This document shows, in pieces, positions 372-22,012 of a stretch of DNA of 32,000 nt. Within the stretch, counting starts at the first letter, position 1. The number at the start of each line of letters is the position of its first letter. The translations under genes were made by a program, and so were the position numbers. Origin of the DNA: Zygophlyctis sp. KS116 (Eukaryota > Fungi > Chytridiomycota); assembly GCA_054661495.1 (NCBI GenBank), contig BAAFSQ010000084.1:1-32000 (forward strand), in the 5' to 3' direction. The notes under the pieces are model-generated. The model was not told the DNA's origin. It did not search any database and saw only the letters and a program-made list of their open reading frames with translations.

Positions 372-2533
372 CTATTTTGACGACCTTTTTAATAAAGAAA
401 ATATTCCTTTGGATATACTCTTTTTTTTCTTTATATCGGTGGAAGGCTAAAGTTATTCATTAATTTTATTACCGTTGCATATACGCTGTTGTAAAATCCT
501 CTATTTTCTAATTCGATTTCTACTTCTTCATCAAAAAGTTGAGATATATAAGGGGCCATCGTGCTTTCTTTCAATGTACGAGTGAAACTTTCAGAGCTAT
601 CATTTGCATTAGTTTTTCCATATTTTGGACTTGCATAATGCGTCAGTGTCCATGGATGTGCCAAAACGTCAACGACAGACAACCTATCATCTGGATTTTT
701 AGCAAGCATTCCTTTTGTTTTAAATTGAACATATAATACCTCTAAGAAGATCTTTGACCTCTTCATTTAAATCATTCGCCAGTACCAGCTGACACGCAGA
801 AATTCTTTCGTAAAGTTGTAACATATTTCTATCATTATCTGACTCAAAAGGATATCTTCCAGTTAACATATTATATCTAAGTAATTATCGTGTTTAATCA
901 AATTACAAGGTGACTCCTGCAGCCCACACATCGACTATCCATTAATTTACAAATTTCTTGCCTTTTTCTCCATCATACTCTTCCATTCCTGATGTTATTT
1001 CGGGGGAGAGAAACTGATGAGTTCCCGCAAAGGTACTGGTCGTCATTTTTTGATTACTATAAATATCAAATTGTTCGGCTACTCCAAAATCACTAACATT
1101 CAGAACTTTCGCCTGAGTAATAAGCATATTTCCCGGCTTAATATCTCGATGAATTACATTCTGAGCGTGTAAATAATTCAAACCTTGCATCAATTGACAG
1201 AAAAAGTAATGTGATCTTTCAATCGTAAATTTTTTCCCTTCAGATTGATCCAAAAGTCCCTGAAGTGTCCAAGGGCAGTACTGAAAAATCAGATAAAACT
1301 TAATGATATTGACTTTTAAATCTTTTCTAGATCCATCTTCATATACCCAAGTAATTGGTTCATTTTCAATATTTTCAAACCAGGGAAAAACGCCCGTAGA
1401 TCCTTTATTGTCTTCCACTTTACAGTAAACATCAATAAGACTGATAATATTTTCGTTTTTAAATTTTCGAAGTAGTTTGATTTCTCTAAGATTTTTAAAA
1501 TGTATTAACAATACCTTATAATGCTCTGCACTCCATTAGGAACTTTTCGTGCTCTTTTTTTGGAGATGATTTTCACTGCAACCCGAAGAAGCGTTTCAGT
1601 ACAAATACCTTCCTTCACCTTCCCAAACGCACCTTTTCCAACCTGATCGCCAATAAGGAATCGCCCAATAGTTTTGATTTTTTTTGTTGTACTGCTGGGA
1701 GCTATCTCGGATGATTCAATTCTATTTATGAAATTGAGACTTCCTGCACCCATATGCTGCGAACTATATACATAATTGTAGTAATCTGCATTAGTATTCA
1801 TCGGAGCTTGATTTACTTCAGTTAGGACATATTCAGATAAAATAACTTCTCTATCAACACCAACGTGAAAACTTGAACCAATATCCCGTTGGTGTAAATG
1901 CATACTTAGAGGCATAAGAGAGGATACTGGTAGAGAAGATCTACGTTGATGAATGATATTGGGTGGTTGATTAACGGTAGAAGGTGCATTTATGGAGGAT
2001 CGTCTTGATAAAGTTGCAATATTTGCAATTACAGAATTCCTCCTTGAGATATTTATATTTACTACTGATGGCTGTCTACTAGACGGTGAAATTCCCATTA
2101 AAAGAATCATTTTTTGAGATGATTGCTGCTGTAACTCGTACTGAAACTCCATAACTTGATCTTTAATTTCTGTTTGAAAGATTATTTCAGAAGTTTTAGT
2201 TGGAAATAAAGCATCTTGTGACCTTAATGCTCCCAGCTGCCGTTGTATTGATGACATTGAGTCGGGAATGTTTTGTGAAGACAGAGATGGTATTCTTGCT
2301 GATAATGGTATTGTATTCTTCGAATCATCATCATTAGTACGATTGAGCCTATTTGTGATACTATGAAGGCTAGAATTGCTTCGTGAAGTTAAACTTTTCA
2401 ATGGATACAACTTAAAGACTGGCTTTGGAATAATAGTTGATAATGGTGCCTCGTACTGTGTAAAGTCTGTAAGATTCACTTCTTCCTGTGATGCGCAGCC
2501 ATACTTGGGAAGGGGCGGAAGGGTGGAATCCAT
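372..2533 (-). CDS. STK11: Ser/Thr kinase, LKB1/STK11-like, with a long Ser-rich N-terminal extension
   Basis: FINRIESSEI..KTIGRFLIGDQVGKGAFGKVKEGICTETLLRVAVKIISKKRARKVPNG matches the LKB1 N-lobe; also HRDIKPGN, DFG and KVDVWAAGVTLYNM. Introns 1486-1514 (29 nt), 935-961 (27, GC-AG), 877-906 (30), 712-739 (28) and 447-472 (26) restore one frame ending TAG at 374-372. Confidence 0.85.
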
Positions 2534-6754: not shown

Positions 6755-7484
6755 TTATTTTCCTGCAATGGGAATTGTCAACTGTGCTGATTTCTTATTA
6801 CGCATCAGTGCAAGATCTCCACGAGGGAAATCTTTTACAGTTTCAAAATTCTTTTCGGGATAATCCATCCAAGTTTGTACTCCATATCTCTTGGATTGTT
6901 CAACTGATGGTAGAAATATATCTACTTTATGGCCATGAGAATCAGTAGATGGCGTAGACTCTAAAATATCAACCAATTTCTGGGAAGAGTATTGAAATCC
7001 AGTATGATTCAAGGTATTAATTCTAATAAATTTACAGATTCAGTAGATTTCCCAGCAGGTTTAGAGACATCCGGACTTTTAGGAAATCCATCAACTTTAG
7101 AATTGGCCTTCATCTGACTTAAATAATGATTTTCAATTTGATCTTGTCCTTGCAAATCAGACTTTTTAGTGATTTTAGCTCTAACATTAAATTATTAAAA
7201 ATAAATCTTACGATTGTCTCTCAATAAACTTGTTTGAATCATCAAAACATAAAAACCACAAATGATCTCTTGGTTCTTGTCTTGGCTTTTGAGAATCATT
7301 GACTGCCTTTGCTTTATTAGTGTAATCAGATGAATGTGTTGTTTTATAAGTTTCCTAAAATTAAAAAACTATAAATTACTGAATGAAATCCATAATCCCA
7401 AATTGCCTTACAAGACTCTGTTTTATTATTCTTTTTCACTTCCTTTTGTGGAGTTCCAGGTCTCTTGATAGCAAAATAAGACAT
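6755..7484 (-). CDS. Hypothetical protein (about 215 aa), weak resemblance to axonemal microtubule-inner-protein motifs
   Basis: ATG at 7484; canonical introns 7355-7379 (25 nt) and 7181-7211 (31 nt) give an open frame. The third intron is either 7010-7035 (GT-TG, 26 nt) or 6980-7035 (GT-AG, 56 nt) and joins the ORF ending at 6755. Confidence 0.65.
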
Positions 7485-7512: not shown

Positions 7513-8288
7513 TTATTCACCATTGACTGTTAATGTTGCAGAGACTAAATCATTCATTTTTGGAAAATTCATCTTTTCCTCTAATGCATTCTAAAATAAA
7601 TCATTAAATATTTTTACCTGTGCCCAAATCAACATTTTCAAAAGATTTGGTAATTTTGGGTCCTTATCTTGACTCTGTGATGTTAAAATTGCTGCATTAA
7701 GTTCTGAAGCTGTTTTTTGCCTTTGAGAAGCCTCTAATAAATCTCCTACTGGAGAAGTAGAAATACTATCAAATGCTAATAGAGCCATTGTACGCTCCAA
7801 TTCCAACAAGAATTCAGGCTTTTCCTTTAATCAAAGTAATTTACATTTTCTTCTCCTCTTGGAGCTAATTCCTGTTGAGCAAAAATAATTGCTTCATTAA
7901 TTTTATCTGCACGAATAAATTCAATTAGTTTTTGTTGTTGAAGATGAAAATAGAGAGCAGGATTTGTATCTAAAATCTACAATTAAATGAAAAATAGTAC
8001 TTCTGGGTCCAAATCGTTAACTTTTTCGATCGCTTCATCAATATTTCCACTTTCGACAGCAGTTCTTACATTCATTCTTTCTTGTATTGTACTCAAATCT
8101 ACATTTGGAGGAATATTGGCTTCTTTAGAAAACTTCTCTGCTGCGTCCTTGTATCCTTGAATGACTAGATAGTTCATGACAAGTTTATTTATATCACTAG
8201 CATTTAATCTAAATTATTACGTTTTATTTATATCTACACTGGCTAGTTTAGACTCCCATTCAGGCGTTGAAATTGACTTTTTTGACAT
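7513..8288 (-). CDS. GID8: GID/CTLH complex subunit Gid8/TWA1 (LisH-CTLH-CRA)
   Basis: INKLVMNYLVIQGYKDAAEKF, PEILDTNPALYFHLQQQKLIE, LELERTMALLAF, RQKTASELNAAIL. Introns 8197-8220 (24 nt), 7977-8000 (24), 7819-7844 (26) and 7591-7617 (27). Confidence 0.93.
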
Positions 8289-16678: not shown

Positions 16679-19600
16679 ATGAAATCTTTCATGTTTATAT
16701 TTAAGTTAATTATTTATTATTCTTTCATCTTTCAACGATGTCAGTCTCAAGTCGTGATTTCATTGGTGGGATCAGACGCTGCCGGAAGAGCAGATGGGAC
16801 TGGAACGCTAGCCAGATTTAATGGCGGCGGTAAAATCTCGATTGATAGTTATGGAAATTTCTTTATGTCTGATCAATTTAATAACAATATAAGAAAAATT
16901 ACGCCTTCAATGGTTGTTACTACTTTTGCTGGATCTAGCTCTGGTCTGTCAGGATATCTTGATGGCGATGCCACCTCGGCGAAATTCAATTGGCCCGGTG
17001 GAACGGCATTTGATAAAGTTGGCAATCTTTATGTTGCTGATTATTCAAATAAAAAAATAAGAAAGATTACTGCTAGTGGTGTTGTCTCAACCTTTGCTTC
17101 AAATGTAGGCGGAGCGGATGGTATCGCTTTTGATAGTAATGGTGATCTCTTTGTCGCAGATTGGGACAATAATAAGATTCTAAAAGTTACTCCAGCTGGA
17201 ATTGTTACTGTATTCGCTGGATCAGGTACTCTCGGATTTGCCGATGGAACTGCAAGTGCCGCAAAATTTAATCGGCCAGCTGACATTGTGGTGGATAGCT
17301 CGAACAATATTTATGTGGCAGAAGATGGCGGTAATATAATTCGTAAAATCACTCCTGCTGGTGCTGTCACTACTCTCGCTGGGTCTATTTTGGGCGCAGC
17401 AGGTTGGGTTGATACTAATGGAACTTTTGCCAAATTCAACCGCCCTTCGGGGATAGCTATTGATAATAGAGGAAATGTTTATGTTGGTGACTATAAAAAC
17501 AATAGAGTGCGGATGATTTCGGCTTTTGGTGTTGTCTCTACTTTTGCCGGGTCTGGAGTATCAGCAAGTACAAATGGCATAGGAACAGCAGCTAGTTTTA
17601 AAGGTCCCTGGTTTTTAACTTTTTCAAATGATTATAAATTTTTATATGTGACTGAATGGGATGGGAACAAAATTTCTAGAATTGAAATTTGTCAGCCAGG
17701 TTTTTATGGTGATTCATATACATTGACTTGCGCTTCATGCCCTGCCAATACATTCAATACTCTGACTGGCAGTACGAGTGTAAATGCTTGTAGATCATGT
17801 CCTTCGGGATATACATCATCCGCAGGCACTACTTCCTGTACAGTCTGTCCGGCTGGAAGCTACGTGAATAGAGCTGGTAATTGTGTAGAATGTTCTGCAG
17901 GATCTTATGGTTCCTCTCCAGCATCCACTCGCTGTACTCTTTGTCCTGCTAATACATTTAACTCCCTGACTGGAAGTACAAATCCAAGTGTTTGCCTACC
18001 TTGCCTCGTTGGATCTTATTCTCCGCTAGGATCGTCTCAGTGCATGATTGATTGTAAAACTATAGGAACAACTACTGGGTCATGCAATGGTAAGTCTCGT
18101 ACAACTACATTCTTTACTGCTGAAGCGACCAATGGTGGCTCTCAATGTACAGCACCGACTGAAATTGCGGCGCCTTGTGCCGATTGTTTGACAACTTCAA
18201 GTACTGTTGGATCTTGTGATGGATCACTACGTGTAACTAGCTACTTTACTGCAGACGCTGTTAATGGAGGATCTGCATGTACCAATCCTCTGGTTACAAC
18301 TGATGCTTGTGCTAACTGCGGAATTACAAGCGCTGAAATTGGAACTTGTGATGGGTCTTCAAGAACCACTTCTTATTATTCATCGACTGCCTTCAATGGA
18401 GGATCATTATGTGATCACGACAGTGCTGTTACTGACGTATGTGGTGACTGTTTGACAACATCGTCTGAAATCGGAACATGTAATGGATCTCAGAGAACTA
18501 CTTCTTATCATACTACTGAAGCGGTTAATGGAGGAAAAGTCTGTGTTGCACCAACTGTTACTATAGATGCTTGCGGTGATTGCCGCACGACCTCAACATT
18601 GACCGAGGCTTGTAATGGAGAATCTCGAACCACTTCATACTTTACAACTTCAGAATTCAATGGTGGCGCTATCTGCACTAATGATATCGTCTCTGTAGAT
18701 GCATGTGGACATTGTAAGACAAACGCGATGGAAATTGGTGAATGTGATGGATCCAGCCGAACAACTTCCTATGGAGTTTCAATGGAATTCAACGGCGGTA
18801 AACCTTGCACTGCTCCCACCATTGATATAGATGCTTGTGCTAACTGCGCTACTACTGAGACTACCTCTGGAGTCTGTGATGGCGATATGAGAACCACTAC
18901 ATTCTATACTTCATCTGAATTAAATGGAGGCACTATTTGTGCTCCAAGTACTACCTTAATTCAAGGTTGCGGAAACTGCAAGCCTACTTCCGTGGAACTA
19001 GGAGAATGTGATGGTACAAAGAGAACAACTAGCTACTTTACTCGTCCTCCTATCAACGGTGGAACATGCACTTTGCCCACTACTGTTGTTGAAAGTTGTT
19101 ATGACTGCAAGACAACAAGCACTTCAATCGGATCTTGTGACGGTGTTTCTAGAACTACGCAGTATTTCATAGCAGAATCTCTAAACGGGGGTGCTGTTTG
19201 TACTGGTCCAACAATGGTTGTAGAGGGATGCCAAAACTGTTCAGTGACTTCATCTAGTATTGGAACATGTGATGGAACATCTCGAACCACTACATTATTC
19301 ACTTCTTCTGCATTCAATGGAGGAGCCAGCTGTACTATTGAACTTGAAACTTCAAACCCTTGTGCGGACTGCTCAACTACTAGCAGCTCAGTTGCACTAT
19401 GCGTTAGTTCTTCACGAACGACTGTATACTTTACTACTGAATCTATCAATGGTGGATCTGCATGTACAGCCCCAACCGAGACTGTTGATTTCTGTGCTGA
19501 TTGCCAGACCACTAGCACACAGTCAGCCACTTGCAATGGAACAAATAGAGTCACTACGTACTTCACGGCTTCTGCCATCAATGGAGGGGCCCAATGTAGC

Positions 19601-20964
19601 GATGATGTCACAGAGAAAACTGATCATTGTGCCGATTGTTTGACAACTTCAAGTACTGTTGGATCTTGTGATGGATCACTACGTGTAACTAGCTACTTTA
19701 CTGCAGACGCTGTTAATGGAGGATCTGCATGTACCAATCCTCTGGTTACAACTGATGCTTGTGCTAACTGCGGAATTACAAGCGCTGAAATTGGAACTTG
19801 TGATGGGTCTTCAAGAACCACTTCTTATTATTCATCGACTGCCTTCAATGGAGGATCATTATGTGATCACGACAGTGCTGTTACTAATGGATGTCATTTA
19901 CCAACTGAAGCTCAGATAATATCTGAAACTTCTTCCAGTAGTATCTCGAAATCTTCTACGACAGTTGTGCCTGAAACAAATTCTATCACTGTATCTGAAA
20001 CTTCTTCCAGTAGTATCTCTGAATCTTCTACGACAGTTGTGCCTGAAACAACTTCTATCACTGTATCTGAAACTTCTTCCAGTAGTATCTCTGAATCTTC
20101 TACGACAATTGTGCCTGAAACAACTTCTATCACTGTATCTGAAACTACGACAATCGAAGCTCAGATAATATCTGGAACTTCTTCCAGTAGTATCTCGAAA
20201 TCTTCTACGACAGTTGTGCCTGAAACAACTTCCAGTGCTTTATCTGAAACTATGTCAAGAGCTGTTCCCGAAATTACATCTACCGAATCTGTCAAGACAG
20301 CGATTACTTCTCAAAAGACATCTGATTGTGATGTAGTATTCTCGTTATGGGAAGGTTTTGGAAAACAATTGGATAGCAAAACAGAGTGTTGCTCAATGAC
20401 TGGAATCACATGCTCTGGTGATAAAGTGATCAAAATGTAAGTTTATTATTATTTTAATATCAGTGATTGGAATAATATGGACCTTACTGGCCCAATTCCT
20501 GAATCTATTGGCTCGTTATCATCTCTACTTGAACTGTAAGAAACATTTAATCTGAAAATCTAGTAAATTATATTCAAACTTCTTATCTGGTTCTATCCCA
20601 GTCTCTATAGGAAATTTGATTTCACTTACAGAAATCAATCTCTCTGCTAATGATTTGACTGGCCCCATTCCGGATTCAATTGGAAATTTGAGCCAGCTTA
20701 AAGAATTGTAAGAAATTTTTAAATTAATAATGTAGACATCTCGGCTATAACTCCATAACCTCTGTTCCTAGTACTATTGGAAAATGTACCAACCTAGAAA
20801 TCCTAGTTCTATGGTATTCAAAATTACAGGAACCACTCCCATCATCAATTTCAAATCTACCATATCTTAAAATAAGCTTGGAAATGGGAGAACAACTAAC
20901 ACAGTCGAATGCAGGAATCAAAATTTATCGACGACTCTTACTTCAAGGTCGAACAATTCGATGA
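16679..20964 (+). CDS. Large secreted mosaic protein: signal peptide, NHL-repeat propeller, TNFR/GCC2_GCC3-like Cys repeats, 14 TSR-like repeats, Ser/Thr stalk, LRR N-cap and plant-type LRRs
   Basis: 1253-aa first exon. Introns 20437-20463 (27 nt), 20536-20563 (28) and 20708-20735 (28) join [15 protein letters not shown] / [15 protein letters not shown] / [15 protein letters not shown] LRRs; TGA at 20962-20964. Confidence 0.85.
18050..19897 (+). repeat. 14 tandem approximately 132-nt (44-aa) Cys-rich coding repeats, including an identical 259-bp duplication
   Basis: Consensus DCxTTSxxxGxCDGxxRTTSYFTxxxxNGGxxCxxxxxxxDxC; 18175-18433 is identical to 19627-19885. Confidence 0.92.
19907..20232 (+). 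repeat. 72-nt tandem repeat encoding a mucin-like [24 protein letters not shown] stalk
   Basis: Units start at 19921, 19993 and 20065, with a partial at 20137 and another copy at about 20170. Confidence 0.9.
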
Positions 20965-21091: not shown

Positions 21092-22012
21092 ATGCGTTTA
21101 CGAACTAAACTGGTCTCTGCGGGAATCCTAACAAGTACATGAATTCCGCTTACAATAGAAATACTAAGCTGCATTGATAAAAGCAAGAGTGCCCTGTTTA
21201 AATTTACACCTGAATCCTTGACTATTTCTAGTGGATGTGGCACCATTTGGGCAACGATAAACACTGTAATTTGAAAATAATGTAATGGTAGAATCTAATG
21301 TTTGATCATTATCTTGTAGAATCCATGTCGGACAATCAGTATTTTTTGTATTTAAAGTTAGGATTTTCCTAGAAATTGATTGTAACGATTTGTTATCTTC
21401 CTTTACAAATCAAGCGTATGATATCTGGTTAAAATTAACAAAACGAAATAATCAGGCAGTTTTAACAATTACAATGATTGATCAGGTAAATATTATGGAT
21501 TAATTCCTTGTCAAAAATATCTATACATTTATCTCATGATATACCAGTAAGAGTTGTGCCACCAAACCTTGGAATGGAGTATTCACCTAGAGTCTTTGAA
21601 ATTCCTGAATTTGAATTTAAATCCTTAAAATTGGTTAAAATTTGGAATTCTAGTCTACTAAAACTCTTTAAAAACTCCAACTTTTTGAAAATATCTGGAA
21701 ATTCAACATGTTTAAAGTTATCTTTGGAATCTACTCAATTGAATTTAGAATTTATTCTTAAATCTAATTCAACCAATGCATTAGATTCTGAATTTAACAC
21801 TAGTGCAATTATAGATACTAGGACATTTCTAAAGTTTACAACTTGTTTTATTACAACTCCACTGTCAATTACAACATGTAACTATAAAATTTAATTTTAC
21901 AGGTATATACACTGAAAAAGTAGTATTTAAAGTGGAAATAGGAAATAATTACGCATCTGGAATACTACCCTGTGCATCTTTATTATATATTTGCCCTTGT
22001 AAAACAGTCTAA
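21092..22012 (+). CDS. HUS1: 9-1-1 checkpoint clamp subunit Hus1 (mostly missed by the ORF track)
   Basis: Spliced product MRLRTKL..FKFTPESL..IWATI..MFDHYLVESMSDNQIFLEI..LKLTKRNNQAVL..HDIPVRV..SLLYICP. Introns 21135-21158 (24 nt), 21266-21291 (26), 21339-21361 (23), 21486-21510 (25, GT-TG) and 21878-21902 (25). Confidence 0.82.

Follow-up and report, generated by a model that had tools for sequence, protein, structure and literature searches.

Can a spliceosomal intron be closed at a TG when no AG lies within reach? The question is raised by a gene predicted to encode HUS1, a subunit of the 9-1-1 checkpoint clamp, in the window analyzed here, a stretch of 32,000 nucleotides from the chytrid Zygophlyctis sp. 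KS116 (contig BAAFSQ010000084.1, positions 1 to 32,000). A preliminary description of this DNA had proposed that the gene needs a 25-nt intron with a GT...TG border and that the spliceosome of this organism may place the 3' splice site by its distance from the branch point.

HUS1 gene and its neighborhood

The gene occupies positions 21092 to 22012 of the forward strand and comprises six exons (21092-21134, 21159-21265, 21292-21338, 21362-21485, 21511-21877, and 21903-22012) with a predicted product of 265 amino acids. Four of its introns are GT-AG: introns 1 (24 nt, 21135-21158) and 5 (25 nt, 21878-21902), read from the sequence and lying at positions common to relatives; intron 2 (26 nt, 21266-21291), also read from the sequence and found in relatives L024 and L027; and intron 3 (23 nt, 21339-21361), placed by the gene model and the relatives. 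Searches used the individual exons of the spliced model; joined exons served for the analyses of reading frame, dN/dS, and phylogeny. Exon 4 alone gave a weak match to PF04005 in a profile search (E = 0.021), and a search of the genome with the Pfam Hus1 profile gave no match, the exons being short. The orthologue of a syntenic relative (P0003) contains PF04005 and matched human HUS1 structures (E = 1.4e-9) in an alignment that includes the HDIP strand, and the neighborhood of TAF9, BolA, and DHFR shows conserved synteny in relatives. These comparisons identify the predicted gene as HUS1. The stop codons of HUS1 and TAF9, which lie on opposite strands, interlock at positions 22009-22012 of the window, and this tail-to-tail pair, together with its BolA and DHFR neighbors, is syntenic in relatives with less than 50% HUS1 identity.

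Micro-introns of the genome

The assembly comprises 12.7 Mb in 1,175 contigs and was encountered in freshwater metagenomes. For a single-exon gene the nearest named matches were chytrids, with Gorgonomyces haynaldii the best (56%), in keeping with an uncultured zoosporic fungus. The gene model was trained on 227 kb of the same genome. In this sample it predicted 460 introns, approximately 2 per kb, with a median length of about 27 nt and with 94% measuring 23 to 31 nt; the minimum was 19 nt, one intron was below 22 nt, and 3 of the 460 were above 49 nt. An A-rich peak lies 6 to 8 nt before the intron end, where a TAA terminates in 258 of 444 introns (mode, 7 nt). With artifactual non-AG calls set aside, 458 of approximately 460 predicted introns end in AG (about 99.5%). 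Of 459 introns, 436 used the first AG at a distance of at least 23 nt as their acceptor; 44 TGs at a usable distance were skipped in favor of an AG. Contigs from four public metatranscriptome RNA runs had three canonical micro-introns near HUS1 removed (23, 27, and 26 nt), and micro-introns are therefore truly spliced here; HUS1 itself was not covered by these runs.

The host is a fungus outside the Microsporidia, and relatives L023 to L035 share introns of 22 to 31 nt; in a recent survey (PMC13644364), the only groups listed with introns under 30 nt are ciliates, microsporidia, dicyemids, and myxozoans. Two GC-AG introns were also predicted, one in a protein kinase gene (window positions 935-961, reverse strand) and one on another contig of the genome (G000 C3:16483-16508). 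Upstream of HUS1, positions 16679-20964 (forward strand) encode a large, secreted-looking mosaic protein with a GC content above that of its surroundings, in which an NHL-like propeller is followed by cysteine-rich repeats, a Ser/Thr stalk, and then LRR-like exons.

Intron 4 of HUS1 and its TG end

Intron 4 (positions 21486-21510, 25 nt, phase 0) is predicted from the sequence, a sister strain, the relatives, and the gene model. Its 5' splice site, GTAAAT (21486-21491), is the third commonest donor of the genome, with a score in the 88th percentile and use by 41 of the 460 sampled introns. The last A of a branch-like TTAAT (21500-21504), the putative branch nucleotide, stands 7 nt before the intron end, which is the modal spacing. 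The 3' end reads CCTTG (21506-21510), with a pyrimidine (T) at -3 and the noncanonical TG at 21509-21510. At the sequence level, then, the donor fits the genome consensus and the branch distance is the usual one, and the terminal AG is absent. An in-frame TAA (21501-21503) sits inside TTAAT and would stop translation at the sixth intron codon if the intron were retained. With the 25 nt removed, the frame is open across 265 codons, and it is open in the sister strain as well.

The GT at 21486 directly follows GAT CAG (ending at 21485), and the next exon lies one frame on, which calls for an intron of 3n + 1 nt. The sequence has no AG between 21486 and 21545. The three nearest AGs, which end at 21547, 21551, and 21553, lie 37, 41, and 43 nt beyond the TG and do not restore the frame. 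An AG in frame is first reached at 21578-21579, 69 nt beyond the TG; its use would produce a 94-nt intron at the cost of 23 residues that include the HDIP strand. When acceptors were scored by context and length, blind to the terminal dinucleotide, the 25-nt end was the best in-frame acceptor (+2.1; the next scored -0.9). A self-trained gene model with any acceptor allowed selected 21486-21510 unaided, and a canonical, AG-only model of this genome dropped HUS1 altogether. The preliminary description thus proved accurate on the layout of donor, stop codon, TTAAT, and TG at 7 nt, on the lack of an AG in the 23- to 31-nt range, on the wrong frame of the three AGs that follow, and on the fit of the 25-nt end. 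The GT-TG observation is confirmed at the DNA level, and intron 4 appears to be an obligatory GT-TG micro-intron, the sole workable splice predicted for HUS1.

Homology alone does not fix the acceptor, because the loop after DQ varies from 4 to 6 residues. Splicing might instead use another in-frame end, giving a 22-nt GT-CC intron, a 28-nt GT-CA intron, or the 94-nt intron with AG, and with the 22-nt end IHL would be preceded by five residues, the length found most often in the relatives. However, both terminal bases are altered at the 22- and 28-nt ends, for which the dinucleotide-blind score is lower by 3.8 to 6.9 log units and the DQ-x-K match is lost, whereas the 94-nt end exceeds the observed length range (3/460 above 49 nt) and removes HDIP. 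A second GT-TG intron, at 7010-7035, is moreover pinned exactly to its TG, and we regard the use of any of these other ends in HUS1 as improbable.

The sole polymorphism within intron 4 bears on a shorter alternative. Position 21497 is G in the window and A in the sister strain, where it creates an in-frame AG 13 nt from the donor and upstream of the branch site, so that a 13-nt intron would be GT-AG in the strain and GT-GG in the window and would add INSL to the loop. This intron is rejected because it has no upstream branch site, falls far under the length range, and adds four residues absent from all relatives. Thirteen nucleotides is less than in any intron predicted here (minimum, 19 nt; one below 22 nt) and less than the 15 to 16 nt of Stentor introns (PMC9505925), and at the equivalent position of the second GT-TG intron the frame is wrong and a stop follows. 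Its probability is therefore very small.

It is about as hard to credit that the segment is not spliced at all and that ribosomes instead shift to the +1 frame at the GAT-TAA stop or reinitiate at the TTG at 21508. The downstream frame is open from 21498, and a +1 shift at the stop would yield a full protein. However, the unspliced product would carry eight extra residues that the relatives lack, the segment has the donor, branch, and length of a local intron, and L027 has a GT-AG intron at the same codon.

Other intron types were also compared with the segment. The donor GTAAAT is unlike the U12-type RTATCCT, U12 donor and branch features are absent, and a U12 snRNA search of the incomplete assembly, which had no positive control, gave no match. 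An IRE1/HAC1-type intron was rejected, as the borders carry no CNG-CNG twin-hairpin motif and the segment folded no better than shuffled sequences (z, 0.28 and -1.25). Intron 4 had no Rfam match and no stable hairpin.

Conservation in a sister strain and in distant relatives

The source is a metagenome-assembled genome, and an assembly error at 21509, or a null allele or pseudogene of HUS1, has to be weighed. Sister strain L021, an independent assembly from another public data set, differs from the window at 32 positions over 970 nt; L021 and L022, the latter probably from the same sample, keep the whole 3' end and the TG of intron 4, with the T at 21509 common to both. Because a strain with 32 differences keeps the TG, it is no assembly error. 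The dN/dS ratio of HUS1 between the strains was 0.164 upstream and 0.168 downstream of intron 4, and downstream we counted 9.5 synonymous versus 5.5 replacement changes (P = 3e-4); a ratio of about 0.17 beyond the intron indicates that the downstream exons are translated. The preliminary description had treated 21509 as a genuine T and HUS1 as a functional gene, and both positions are upheld. With the same TG in a strain 3% apart from a separate data set, an intact frame, and a dN/dS of 0.17 downstream, error or gene decay is largely refuted and can be given almost no probability.

Five more distant HUS1 relatives (L023 to L027, 44 to 49% identity) were recovered, and two metagenome scans returned no loci of HUS1 relatives. 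At the same HUS1 codon, L027 carries a canonical GT-AG intron of 23 nt, giving DQ|AK; L023 to L026 are intronless there and read DQ-NK or DQ-TK; the window HUS1 with the 25-nt intron removed reads DQ|SK. In the HUS1 tree, L027 clusters with the intronless L023, L025, and L026 (support, 98), and intron 4 is therefore either ancestral with subsequent losses or was gained twice. We infer, as the simplest reading, that an AG changed to TG at intron 4. Introns 2 and 4 of HUS1 are patchy among relatives, which points to fast intron turnover in the clade. In GID8 (window positions 7819-8220, reverse strand), three introns are cleanly missing in relative L029, in which the neighboring gene has about 77% protein identity.

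The same comparisons bear on the idea that selection maintains the UG end as a regulatory bottleneck, in which slow splicing, retention, and decay via the stop codon tune HUS1 and which would be compatible with the explanation preferred below. The TG is kept across approximately 9% synonymous divergence, retention would create a premature stop, and a regulatory role has also been raised for human TG sites (PMC2374985). However, the TG is not conserved beyond the species, five relatives having AG or no intron, the affected genes are unrelated, and two strains cannot tell selection for TG from too little time. We consider selection for regulation unlikely.

Further GT-TG introns and their frequency

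The gene model found, unaided, a second GT...TG intron in the window (7010-7035, reverse strand, 26 nt) with a TTAAT-n-CCTTG end. An intronless relative reads TTES-NHTG against STES|NHTG, so that the gap measures exactly 26 nt; the TG is also present in strain L031, where the donor reads GTAAGT. Splicing at an in-frame AG that follows 30 nt downstream would cost ten conserved residues. The small gene that contains this intron is similar to ciliary microtubule inner proteins (CFAP68/95/107-like), a resemblance that we offer as a lead. CC at -5/-4 is present in 4 of 444 canonical introns versus both TG introns of the window, a post hoc hint. CCTTG is not universal: in another species of the clade, TAF9 contains a 28-nt candidate GT-TG intron (L024:2775-2802, reverse strand, single contig; GTAAGT...GTTTG) that ends in GTTTG. 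Splicing at this TG would recover the KKLK motif that intronless relatives show, and the only short canonical option has a poor donor and loses KKLK.

The window's two GT-TG introns compare with approximately 460 introns, and the one that was not preselected corresponds to 0.2% (interval, 0.005 to 1.2%); GT-TG introns may make up about 0.2 to 0.4% of the introns of this genome. Some 415 introns on the other contigs of the sample contained no convincing GT-TG case, and, where inspected, the model's calls with CG, GG, AA, CA, or TT ends read through or had canonical alternatives. For the genome-wide count of GT...TG introns proposed in the preliminary description, pattern counts showed no excess of TG when sites with a downstream AG were excluded (TG 48 versus TC 55). 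The CCTTG end occurred 34 times, versus 24 in a reversed control, and a tight context gave 14 matches for TG (12 distinct), 5 for TC, and 55 for AG. By these patterns TG ends are at most slightly in excess genome-wide, with no bulk class. An identical 25-nt donor-to-TG stretch was present on three contigs (C144, C408, and C985 of G000), which probably represent a repeat or a paralogue family. With some 25,000 introns expected in the genome, tens of GT-TG cases are plausible, and GT-TG introns probably form a small class in this genome and across the clade.

A probable fallback acceptor at the modal branch distance

U2 snRNA, Prp8, Prp18, and Slu7 were all found in the genome, and wholesale loss of machinery is therefore not the cause; the suggested loss of second-step components does not apply to Prp8, Prp18, or Slu7. 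The proposed likeness of the branch-to-end spacing to that of canonical introns stands, with 258 of 444 introns at 6 to 8 nt and the TG at the mode of 7. The broader proposal, that the 3' site is set by branch distance and TG is tolerated, survives in part: the TG lies at the modal spacing, but AG is preferred and 44 usable TGs are skipped. Distance alone is too strong a statement, because AG wins wherever it is available. On sequence evidence, TG would be a fallback acceptor at the modal branch distance.

Structural work on the yeast P complex shows G(-1) paired with G(+1), contact between A(-2) and the branch A, and recognition of the -3 pyrimidine by Prp8; U(-2) mutants are strongly defective in ligation, and Slu7 is dispensable if the branch-to-end distance is below nine nucleotides (bioRxiv 10.1101/212811). 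In its sequence, HUS1 intron 4 retains these contact bases except A(-2), with a tether of 7 nt. We think it likely that 21486-21510 is an ordinary U2-type micro-intron with a UG 3' end that is docked by default after an ancestral AG-to-TG change. In introns of 23 to 31 nt, the donor and branch site would define the intron and leave 6 to 8 nt between the branch A and the exon, and an intron of 25 nt would be too short to accommodate either scanning or a pyrimidine tract. Because donor and branch would leave no space for these, the UG at branch +7 could dock by default: after branching, the short tether would place the G at branch +7 in the active site, G(-1) would pair with G(+1), U(-3) would be read as usual, and the contact of A(-2) with the branch A would be the only one lost. 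With no AG within reach (the next is 37 nt away), the UG would be ligated by default, and for this reason the ancestral AG-to-TG change could have been tolerated and have reached fixation before the divergence of the two strains. The UG class would be favored by a strong donor, TTAAT at the modal distance, and a pyrimidine-rich end. The efficiency of the HUS1 TG may be low, because yeast U(-2) mutants are defective and human AG>TG mutants showed no splicing at the TG (PMC2374985).

A more far-reaching version, which we find conceivable but somewhat less probable than its opposite, is that the major spliceosome of the clade has a relaxed check of A(-2), with tens to about a hundred efficient UG-only acceptors per genome, set by the branch distance together with a pyrimidine-rich end and not by any neighboring AG, and with a traceable change in U2AF1, Prp8, or Prp18.

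Comparison with known systems

TG 3' splice sites in human U2 introns were described for GNAS and 35 other genes and account for 0.02% of sites (Szafranski 2007, PMC2374985). HUS1 intron 4 resembles them in its GT...TG borders, U2-type donor, and pyrimidine at -3. However, the human TG acceptors serve only as alternatives to an AG that lies at most 28 nt away, and orthologous sites with AG were not found for them (PMC2374985). The HUS1 TG is predicted to be obligatory; its nearest AG is 37 nt off, and an orthologous intron ends in AG. The TG-AG tandem class was rejected for HUS1, the next AG being 37 nt downstream and out of frame; the second intron (7010-7035), with an in-frame AG 30 nt downstream, is borderline for the 28-nt limit of that class. 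GT-TG is likewise a rare noncanonical pair in other animals and fungi, with 23 of approximately 60,000 Drosophila introns, 22 of which have a similar alternative splice (PMC4528330), and 22 introns (0.024%) in Ganoderma (PMC11590231). Compared with these, the estimated rate here is about ten times higher (with a wide interval, 0.005 to 1.2%, for the intron that was not preselected), and HUS1 lacks a canonical alternative. The GT-GG intron of BANP (Parada 2014, PMC4176328) is like HUS1 intron 4 in that -2 is changed, G(-1) is kept, and an outgroup (fish) has AG, but it ends in GG instead of TG and is a long vertebrate intron.

As far as the cited portions of the reports extend, Stentor (15 to 16 nt; PMC9505925) and the myxozoans and dicyemids (22 to 27 nt; PMC13644364) likewise combine tiny introns, a near-fixed branch distance, and a scant pyrimidine tract with standard U2 machinery, but these portions describe AG ends and no TG class. 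In Fritillaria borealis, 95% of introns are noncanonical, a state tied to a duplicated U2AF, and as proposed here the major spliceosome takes non-AG 3' ends constitutively (PMC13326754). A system of that type, in which most introns are noncanonical, was rejected for this genome, where more than 99% of introns in the 227-kb sample end in AG. In the literature searched, which lacked most subscription journals, we found no description of GT-TG introns as a class in chytrids.

Significance

The GT-TG pair was already known as rare; what appears to be new here is a TG predicted as the sole acceptor, with no AG partner. The sole genome-wide study of TG acceptors concluded that TG cannot function without a neighboring AG (PMC2374985). 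If conserved genes do depend on UG ends, the need for an AG can be sidestepped in introns so short that the branch tethers the 3' end, and early AG recognition by U2AF would thereby be separated from docking in the second step. The natural series of AG, TG, and no intron at one HUS1 codon provides ready test substrates. Gene finders restricted to AG miss or truncate such genes, which is relevant to the annotation of environmental chytrids.
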